The notes beneath the pieces are model-generated. The model saw nothing but the letters and a program-made list of their open reading frames with translations, made no database searches and was not told where the DNA came from. Source: Perkinsus chesapeaki ATCC PRA-425 (lineage: Eukaryota; Protista; Perkinsozoa). Taken from it: a stretch of 55,928 nucleotides of DNA. The position numbers and the translations under genes were made by a program. This document shows positions 48,302-50,401 of the stretch, piece after piece. The DNA is taken from assembly GCA_013115145.1 (NCBI GenBank), contig JAAPAO010000187.1:1-55928 (forward strand), read 5' to 3'. Numbering within the stretch: position 1 is the stretch's first letter; each line of letters opens with the position of its first letter.

Positions 48302-48458
48302 TGAGAGCTAGATATCATGTTTCACAGTTATGTTATTATTGTTATTGTTATTATGTAATGTATGGGTATTAATAGCAGTATTTGCCAATATAATAAGTAT
48401 TATGGGTAGTGGTTGTTAAAGTAGATTGATGATCACACTATACAACAACGCAATACCA

Positions 48459-49017
48459 TTATATATAAAGAGCATCACTCTCAATAGGATCCAATACACT
48501 ATTTTGCCTTTCTCGTAGATATCTGTAGAGCACATTGTAGGTTAATACATAATACTATGGTTACTCAGCTATATCATTCTGTAATTGGAATATCCTTTGC
48601 ATCCTCTTATCCTCAGCTGATGGATCCCTCTGTACCTTAATGATAGCTGTACTATCAACTATTATTATACAGGTAACATTACTACCTTCATAGACAATAC
48701 CTCACCAACTACTAACTGATCTGGTAATAATGATAATGGTATATTAACCGATTGATGATCGTATCTAATAATAATACTACATACATTATCATCATGCACA
48801 TCATCATAACATACGTTATTAAAGTTGCTATACCGTCCTCTAGATCAACACGTCCAACGAAGAAGCGATTCTTAGCTGAAGAGCGGCAGGAGCAGGGATT
48901 GGGTTGTTATACAGTTATTATACCTTGCATTGTTAGAAATGGAAGGTCATCTTCAACTGTAGCATCTATAGCTGATTGGGCTGGTGATGTCCTCAATATT
49001 GAACTTGATATTGACAT
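48459..49017 (-). CDS. 122-aa stand-alone Chs5-N-like domain protein (five exons)
   Basis: Exons 49017-48924, 48875-48815, 48764-48686, 48635-48565 and 48522-48459 sum to 369 nt in frame. Core sequence: FFVGRVDLEDGIATLITYDHQSVNIPLSLLPDQLVVGEVLSMKVQRDPSAEDKRMQRIFQLQNDIAEYL. Confidence 0.65.
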
Positions 49018-49114
49018 AGTATTATACTACAGACACACAATAATAGTTATACTTAACACAATAATAGTATTAATAGAAAGTATACATCATAATAGCTATC
49101 ATGATTACAGTTTA

Positions 49115-50165
49115 TTATCCATACTTACTATATCCTATATTATCCATTCTTCTTGTATTACTCTCCTCTTCATCTTTACTACTACTACTTCCCCAACATG
49201 GTGGTATACATGTTCCCCTTCCCCATAATGTTGATAATAAGCTACCATCCCCACTAATAGTAGATGCTCTCTGCTCCTTATGCTCTACTTCTTGTGTCAT
49301 ATTAAATATCTTAGGTGGTGATGTTGATAAAGTATGTGTAGTTATACATCTATTACCATACTAATAACATTGTCTAATACCTTCTTATTACCTTGGATCC
49401 ATAACACCTTCATCAATCTTACTAAATATCCGTGTAGTTAATGTACGAAATACCTCTTGTATACCCTCCCCAGTAGCTGCTGATGTTTCCATAAATAATA
49501 CTGAATTCTCTTGAGCAAATCGACTAGCTTCTAGGAATGATACCTAACACTAATATACTTCAACTATTATTATAATACCTATTACCTGCCTACTGTTAGT
49601 AGATAGATCTTTTTTGTTACCCAGTATTATAATAGGTATATTATCTATCTCCCCCGTCTCCCTTTTAGCATCTTGTAACCATGTAGGTATATGATTATAA
49701 CTATCTCTACATGTTATATCATATACTAATACAACCCCAGCTGCACCTTTATAATAACTCCTAGTAACAGTACGATATCTAAACATACTCCTCCAGCTAG
49801 ACCAGGTAATGGATAATATCTTACCTTTCCTGACCAGCTGTATCCCATATCTGTAGTTTAACCCTTTTACCATTAACTTTAATAATTTTACTAGCAAATT
49901 CAATACCAATAGTATGAGCCGATTCATAGCCATTAAATATCCCATCCAAGAATTGTTTAATAATACATGATTTACCGGATCCAGCATCCCCTATTATAAT
50001 AATCTTTAACCGAATATCATATTCATGTAACTGTGATGATAAGGGTGATATATGGTTATTTGATGCCCTCCGTGCTGCTAAGGGTGATAATGCTACTGCA
50101 GCTGCAGCAGCAGCCATAGCTTCACTTGAAGATGTTGTACTAGATGATGTCCCAGCATATCGCAT
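49115..50165 (-). CDS. RAB4: Rab4-like small GTPase
   Basis: [54 protein letters not shown], and [19 protein letters not shown] (Rab4 signature). The C-terminal exon is uncertain. Confidence 0.88.
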
Positions 50166-50401
50166 AATATACAACAATACTACTGTGGATATATGATGAT
50201 TCACTAACACTAGTAATATGATAATATTCACAGAAACTAATAACATGATGTTGTTATTCCTCCTCAACAGCTCTCCTCTCCGGTATACCAGCTTTACGAC
50301 GGAACTCTCGTAGCTTGGCATCAAACCTTTTCTCACTAATGCCCTCTGATTTATATACTGCCTCCTAAAGGATATCGCTTTATACGTATTATTATACATT
50401 A

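Follow-up and report, generated by a model that had tools for sequence, protein, structure and literature searches.

The window, the whole stretch of DNA analysed here (55,928 nt; contig JAAPAO010000187.1 of assembly GCA_013115145.1) from Perkinsus chesapeaki, a parasite of oysters and clams, contains a small spliced gene on the minus strand (49017-48459). Its product is a protein that stands alone and belongs to the Chs5-N branch within the Chs5-N/DUF3006 superfamily. Chs5 is a Golgi cargo-adaptor protein of fungi, and the module made up of its first ~77 residues recurs in the central 70 residues of the Perkinsus protein, as four beta-strands and then a long helix. The host had been labelled an alveolate in the initial annotation, which is correct for Perkinsus, and an alveolate that transcribes a stand-alone homologue of Chs5-N challenges the view that Chs5 is found only in fungi, as held by the only systematic survey (PMC6057913).

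The gene comprises five frame-consistent exons totalling 369 nt, which encode 122 aa and a TAA stop codon. The four introns are 48, 50, 50, and 42 nt long, all begin with GT and end with AG, and fall in phases 1, 2, 0, and 2. The largest ORF on the gene, in exon 3, has 44 aa and none reaches 60 aa; the ORF track misses the gene because no ORF longer than 44 aa spans it. The product of exon 1 is an N-terminal extension rich in serine, threonine, and acidic residues, and neither exon 1 nor exon 5 matched any family in an exon-by-exon Pfam scan. The features of the gene, in the direction of transcription, are as follows.

49027..49028, minus strand: trans-splice acceptor AG, followed by a 9-nt 5' UTR (49026-49018); the match of each of the four cDNA contigs ends at 49028.
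48924..49017, minus strand: exon 1, with the ATG at 49017, 31 aa plus 1 nt (translation, cDNA).
48876..48923, minus strand: intron 1, 48 nt, GT..AG, phase 1 (sequence, cDNA).
48815..48875, minus strand: exon 2, the first two predicted strands of the Chs5-N/DUF3006 domain (KNRFFVGRVDLEDGIATLIT) (translation, cDNA, AlphaFold model).
48765..48814, minus strand: intron 2, 50 nt, GT..AG, phase 2 (sequence, cDNA).
48686..48764, minus strand: exon 3, domain core (YDHQSVNIPLSLLPDQLVVGEVLSMK) with the DH and LLP motifs common to Chs5 (translation, Pfam, cDNA).
48636..48685, minus strand: intron 3, 50 nt, GT..AG, phase 0 (sequence, cDNA).
48565..48635, minus strand: exon 4, start of the predicted C-terminal helix (VQRDPSAEDKRMQRIFQLQNDIAE), equivalent to the Chs5 dimerisation helix (translation, cDNA, phmmer, model).
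48523..48564, minus strand: intron 4, 42 nt, GT..AG, phase 2, kept in the public gene model (sequence, cDNA).
48459..48522, minus strand: exon 5, rest of the predicted helix and tail (YLRERQNSVLDPIESDALYI), with the TAA at 48461-48459 (translation; cDNA only to 48471).

The RNA evidence comes from one public study, a 454 "RT-PCR" metatranscriptome with four runs and two samples. Four cDNA contigs match the exons with 100% identity and contain all four predicted splice joints, which connect 48522 to 48565, 48635 to 48686 (reported with a 3-nt slide), 48764 to 48815, and 48875 to 48924. The five-exon, phase-consistent gene of 122 aa proposed in the initial annotation, absent from the ORF track, is thus confirmed by its translation and by the cDNA joints, and its four introns are spliced out in the contigs. 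All four contigs continue past 49028 with GTCCGTAGCCATTTTGGCTCA (reverse complement), which is a dinoflagellate-type spliced leader. Because the contigs carry this leader from 49028 on, the genomic AG at 49028-49027 is the trans-splice acceptor. Spliced-leader trans-splicing is documented in Perkinsus, P. chesapeaki included (PMC3101222). The 3' ends of the contigs run into A-tracts, and the transcript measures ~400 nt from spliced leader to poly(A). The gene is a genuine nuclear one and is transcribed, and its RNA is spliced, trans-spliced, and polyadenylated.

The contigs depart from the genome at 48471/48473, 10 to 12 nt before the predicted stop codon, and continue as (A)1-3 CTTTA(A)n (region 48416-48473, minus strand), so that the last 3 to 4 residues of the predicted protein are unsure. 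Three causes of this odd 3' end are possible: the RNA may be polyadenylated at the stop codon or close to it, the strains may differ, or a non-canonical intron of 48 nt may be removed. A candidate for such a fifth, non-canonical intron of ~48 nt lies at 48470-48423, with ACTTTAA in the genome at 48422.

Domain searches, as well as the fold and tree analyses, were performed with residues 219-289 of the public protein model P0001 (P0001:219-289), which correspond to spliced exons 2-4 and hold the whole domain. The domain matches Pfam CHS5_N (PF16892) with 30.1 bits (E 4.5e-7) over positions 3-48 of 48, below the gathering score of 39.8, and DUF3006 (PF11213) with 36.4 bits (E 5.9e-9) over positions 6-65 of 67, above the gathering score of 32.3; inside P0001, the DUF3006 score is 32.5 bits. 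The CHS5_N profile match that the initial annotation had proposed as a check of its reading therefore holds as a significant, full-length match but not as one that passes the family cutoff, which DUF3006 does. For reference, true Chs5 proteins score 73 to 87 bits on CHS5_N and their N-termini match DUF3006 below threshold at 21 to 23 bits, and bacterial DUF3006 members reach E 1.4e-28 on DUF3006. NCBIfam gave no hit. In a phmmer search against all PDB sequences, the sole hits below E 0.5 were yeast Chs5 chains 4wjw_A (3.8e-5), 4in3_A, and 4q66_A. The resemblance of the core to the yeast Chs5 N-terminus, noted in the initial annotation, is real, since HMMER aligns 61 residues of the Perkinsus domain to Chs5 residues 10-68. 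By BLASTP, the protein shares 55% identity over 55 aa (E 1e-16) with the environmental Chs5 N-terminal exon P0012. Single exons were weak queries, with Pfam returning only DUF3006 at E 0.058 (exon 3), phmmer against PDB nothing relevant, and an ESM Atlas feature search with the exon-3 ORF no usable lead.

Profile-profile comparison with hhalign joined the Perkinsus domain to a Chs5-N alignment (96.9%, E 1.3e-10, 30% identity, 64 columns) and to DUF3006 (96.0%, E 4.2e-9), and joined Chs5-N to DUF3006 (97.1%, E 6e-11). These profile matches show that Chs5-N and DUF3006 are homologous and share common ancestry. The caution about bacterial DUF3006 that accompanied the first reading of the protein was well placed, as the Perkinsus domain scores above the DUF3006 cutoff and hhalign relates the two families. 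The link of the Chs5 head to the uncharacterised bacterial DUF3006, as judged from these comparisons, provides the first structural and evolutionary context for both families.

Bacterial and Chs5 sets were assembled by motif. A degenerate LP...KEGDV motif, run against bacterial genomes, yielded 40 proteins, all of which match DUF3006 (40/40) and none of which matches CHS5_N at E 1e-3 (0/40); among the 41 sequences formed by this set and the Perkinsus protein, CHS5_N is matched in 1/41, by Perkinsus only. The Perkinsus domain lacks the DUF3006 hallmarks IDRFEG and LP...KEGDV and has VGRVDLEDG and LLPDQLVVGEVL in their place, KEGDV being invariant in the bacterial sample by construction since the motif served as search bait. 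Metagenome contigs were scanned with DH..P..LLP..G..M, a pattern common to the Perkinsus protein and Chs5, and 5/5 hits were Chs5 genes, namely S. cerevisiae CHS5, that of another yeast, and environmental Chs5 (L122).

A maximum-likelihood tree (IQ-TREE, LG+C20) was built from 49 rows and 73 columns, comprising the Perkinsus protein, 8 Chs5-N sequences, and 40 bacterial DUF3006 sequences. Perkinsus and the 8 Chs5-N sequences split from the 40 bacterial sequences with a support of 99/100, a clade that is relied on here without its internal order, given the short alignment (73 columns) and the bias that the search motif brings to the bacterial sample. The initial annotation had allowed that homologues might group with DUF3006 alone; the protein is placed with Chs5-N instead. 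Within the Chs5-N group, no branch is longer than that of Perkinsus (1.31). Of the diagnostic residues, the Chs5 invariants G11, T22, and H25 are kept in Perkinsus and occur in 0% to 5% of the bacterial sequences, and D24 is kept and occurs in 28% of them. P31, LLP34-36, and G42, which are shared positions, are kept as well.

The AlphaFold model, computed with the 40 bacterial proteins as alignment, has a pLDDT of 86.9 and shows strands at 2-11, 16-20, 26-30, and 43-47 and a helix at 52-70 (domain numbering); its alignment contains bacterial DUF3006 only, and the Chs5 structures may have been among those on which AlphaFold was trained. A single-sequence model was poor (pLDDT 63) and served as a lead only. 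In a Foldseek search against PDB, the top seven matches were Chs5 chains, and six chains of 4Q66 and 4IN3 gave TM 0.78 to 0.81 and rmsd 1.5 to 1.7 Å over 69 columns of 71 residues with 28% identity; the next family was HypC (TM 0.62, rmsd 6.3 Å). With VIA-align, Chs5 reached Z 8.7 and 8.1 and HypC 6.8, and all else remained at or below 5.2. An ESM Atlas model of P0001 219-289 had only DUF3006 and fungal Chs5 clusters as nearest neighbours, the best being a bacterial DUF3006 cluster (TM 0.80, 68 residues aligned), with fungal Chs5 clusters at TM 0.63. The modelled fold of the domain is that of Chs5(1-77) in the exomer crystals. In all, the Chs5-N reading put forward initially is supported by sequence, fold, phylogeny, and Chs5-specific residues.

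The FN3 and BRCT (FBE) domains, the part of Chs5 that binds Arf1, are absent, and the protein ends ~20 aa after the Chs5-N-like domain. Because only ~400 nt of cDNA lie between the spliced leader and poly(A), the absence of both domains noted from the genomic sequence is borne out by the full-length transcript. ChAPs are TPR proteins of the Bch1/Chs6 type. In yeast, Chs5(1-77) is enough by itself both for homodimerisation and for ChAP binding (PMC4207043). A survey of exomer evolution describes Chs5 as fungus-specific and ChAPs as ancient and widespread, occurring in ciliates, Toxoplasma, Neospora, and many other non-fungal lineages, where their partner is not known and "an analogous subunit" has been suggested; Perkinsus was not among the species sampled, and ChAPs bind Arf directly (PMC6057913). 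A dimeric mini-scaffold is inferred for Perkinsus because Chs5(1-77) suffices for both activities (PMC4207043) and non-fungal ChAPs have no known partner (PMC6057913). The protein would dimerise through its C-terminal helix, which is predicted and aligns to the Chs5 helix, and each beta-module would hold one partner protein, most likely a ChAP-type TPR protein. The outcome would be a minimal 2:2 "core exomer," with contact to Arf1 and the membrane made by the ChAP alone. Taken as a whole, the reading that this genuine spliced gene encodes a Chs5-N protein of ~120 aa acting as a dimeric scaffold for a ChAP-type TPR partner is plausible but tentative. The protein is a concrete candidate partner for the orphan ChAPs of non-fungal eukaryotes. 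A broader proposal, which is considerably more speculative and rather doubtful, is that a stand-alone mini-Chs5 was the ancestral ChAP partner across eukaryotes, so that the core exomer would predate fungi, fungal Chs5 would have arisen by fusion to FN3-BRCT, the module itself would derive from bacterial DUF3006, and Perkinsus would be the first organism seen with the unfused form.

A serious possibility, if a somewhat unlikely one, is that the protein is a small protein of the DUF3006 type, in an ancestral stand-alone form with another partner and a role unrelated to exomer, and that its likeness to Chs5-N reflects ancestry only. It passes the Pfam curated cutoff for DUF3006 (36.4 versus 32.3 bits) but lacks the IDRFEG and KEGD hallmarks and keeps the Chs5-specific residues. 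Its best structural neighbour in ESM Atlas is a bacterial DUF3006 cluster (TM 0.80, 68 residues) and its stand-alone core of ~70 residues is the DUF3006 architecture, yet the tree places it in a clade with Chs5-N (99/100), and its identity to a true Chs5 N-terminus is 55%, compared with 16% to 30% to the bacterial proteins. The bacterial gene neighbourhoods also favour a separate DUF3006 role, since the gene beside DUF3006 on the same strand encodes a protein of the Lactamase_B/metallo-beta-lactamase (MBL) fold in 6/10 loci. This MBL-fold protein is a possible functional partner of the uncharacterised DUF3006.

For the origin of the Perkinsus gene, an old capture of a fungal-type Chs5 first-exon region has also to be weighed, by horizontal transfer followed by intron gain, after which the sequence would now have another use or be nearly neutral and would not be an ancestral eukaryotic component. 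The highest identity of the protein (55%) is indeed to P0012, a Chs5 N-terminal exon with a close homologue in L122 that has the full Chs5 architecture. Four Perkinsus-type mini-introns, spliced-leader trans-splicing, and the local base composition speak against a capture, as does the branch length of 1.31, the longest in the Chs5-N group, which is expected of an outgroup. In the searches run, no homologue was seen in other non-fungal eukaryotes, which would fit a capture, but the sensitivity of these searches is too low to claim absence elsewhere. Specifically, when 1.84 billion representatives were searched with the 44-aa ORF of exon 3, the hits were P0001 and one other protein, P0002, which was rejected as a spurious repeat protein; word searches with P0001:180-289 (60 to 192 aa range) and P0001:219-289 (159 to 506 aa range) and a metagenome scan with the Perkinsus domain found no relatives; and a profile and word search with the Perkinsus plus Chs5-N alignment found only fungal-looking Chs5 first exons. 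As no second non-fungal homologue was found, acquisition by a single lineage is possible, and the capture described above is considered improbable.

The public NCBI/UniRef model P0001, "Rab-4A" (289 aa; 48565-50399, minus strand), joins an upstream Rab gene, whose product is a Ras family member and a Rab2/4/14-like GTPase, to exons 2-4 of the small gene. The model stops early because it retains intron 4. The reading of the domain as the C-terminal part of a 289-aa Rab GTPase fusion, with no separate protein, has this model in its favour, as well as the distance of only ~85 nt (Rab stop codon to spliced-leader acceptor) between the two genes, which share a strand, but it is scarcely credible and is rejected on the RNA evidence, as 4/4 cDNA contigs link exon 2 to exon 1 and begin with the spliced leader at 49028, the intron 4 that P0001 retains is removed in cDNA, and the fusion requires a 549-nt intron where local introns are 42 to 50 nt. 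P0001 is a chimera of two separate genes and the public gene model is wrong; it is corrected here as a Rab-4A fusion artefact. The last exon of the Rab gene (49112-49330, minus strand) appears to end without the usual C-terminal CC/CXC prenylation motif, and the true 3' structure of that gene may include another small intron.

Among known systems, HypC/HupF chaperones (3D3R) resemble the predicted Perkinsus domain in having a small beta-barrel and a C-terminal helix (Z 6.8), a likeness at the fold level only, with an rmsd of 4.6 Å, 16% identity, and no signal at the sequence level. Bacterial DUF3006 proteins are likewise small and stand-alone with a layout of four strands and a helix, but they carry IDRFEG and LP...KEGDV, which the Perkinsus protein lacks, and they share 16% to 30% identity with the Perkinsus protein. 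DUF3006 was not mentioned in the literature searched. The six loci with an MBL-fold neighbour are L015, L038, L067, L085, L099, and L100, and some of the MBL-fold proteins have SLH or lamin-tail domains. A subgroup of DUF3006 has a C-terminal GDIDL/GDIWL/FDL-like motif (L011, L094, L017, L079, L100, and L113), and in L011 the DUF3006 gene (150-368) immediately precedes a RelA/SpoT (p)ppGpp synthetase gene (406-2763).

The closest sequence found to the Perkinsus protein is the environmental Chs5 P0012. On its own contig the downstream gene has no family on record, and its close homologue in L122 has fn3_2 and BRCT. The L122 gene (P0006/P0007; 3942-5021, minus strand) has the canonical architecture of Chs5, with fn3_2 and BRCT exons after the N-terminal exon. 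The environmental Chs5 sequences P0006, P0007, and P0012 are probably of fungal origin, and the fn3_2 and BRCT part of the L122 gene is short.

Residues 1-77 of S. cerevisiae Chs5 (4IN3, 4Q66, and 4WJW) have the fold predicted for the Perkinsus domain over 69/71 residues, share 28% to 30% identity with it, and belong to the same clade. The motifs common to the Chs5 N-terminus and the Perkinsus protein are VG+xD, T.DH, P..LLP, and G.+..M.V, and a charged helix comes after them. Unlike yeast Chs5, the Perkinsus protein has no FN3 domain, no BRCT domain (FBE), and no long C-terminal tail; it carries a 2-residue insert after VGRVD and a 31-aa N-terminal extension, and its host is not a fungus.
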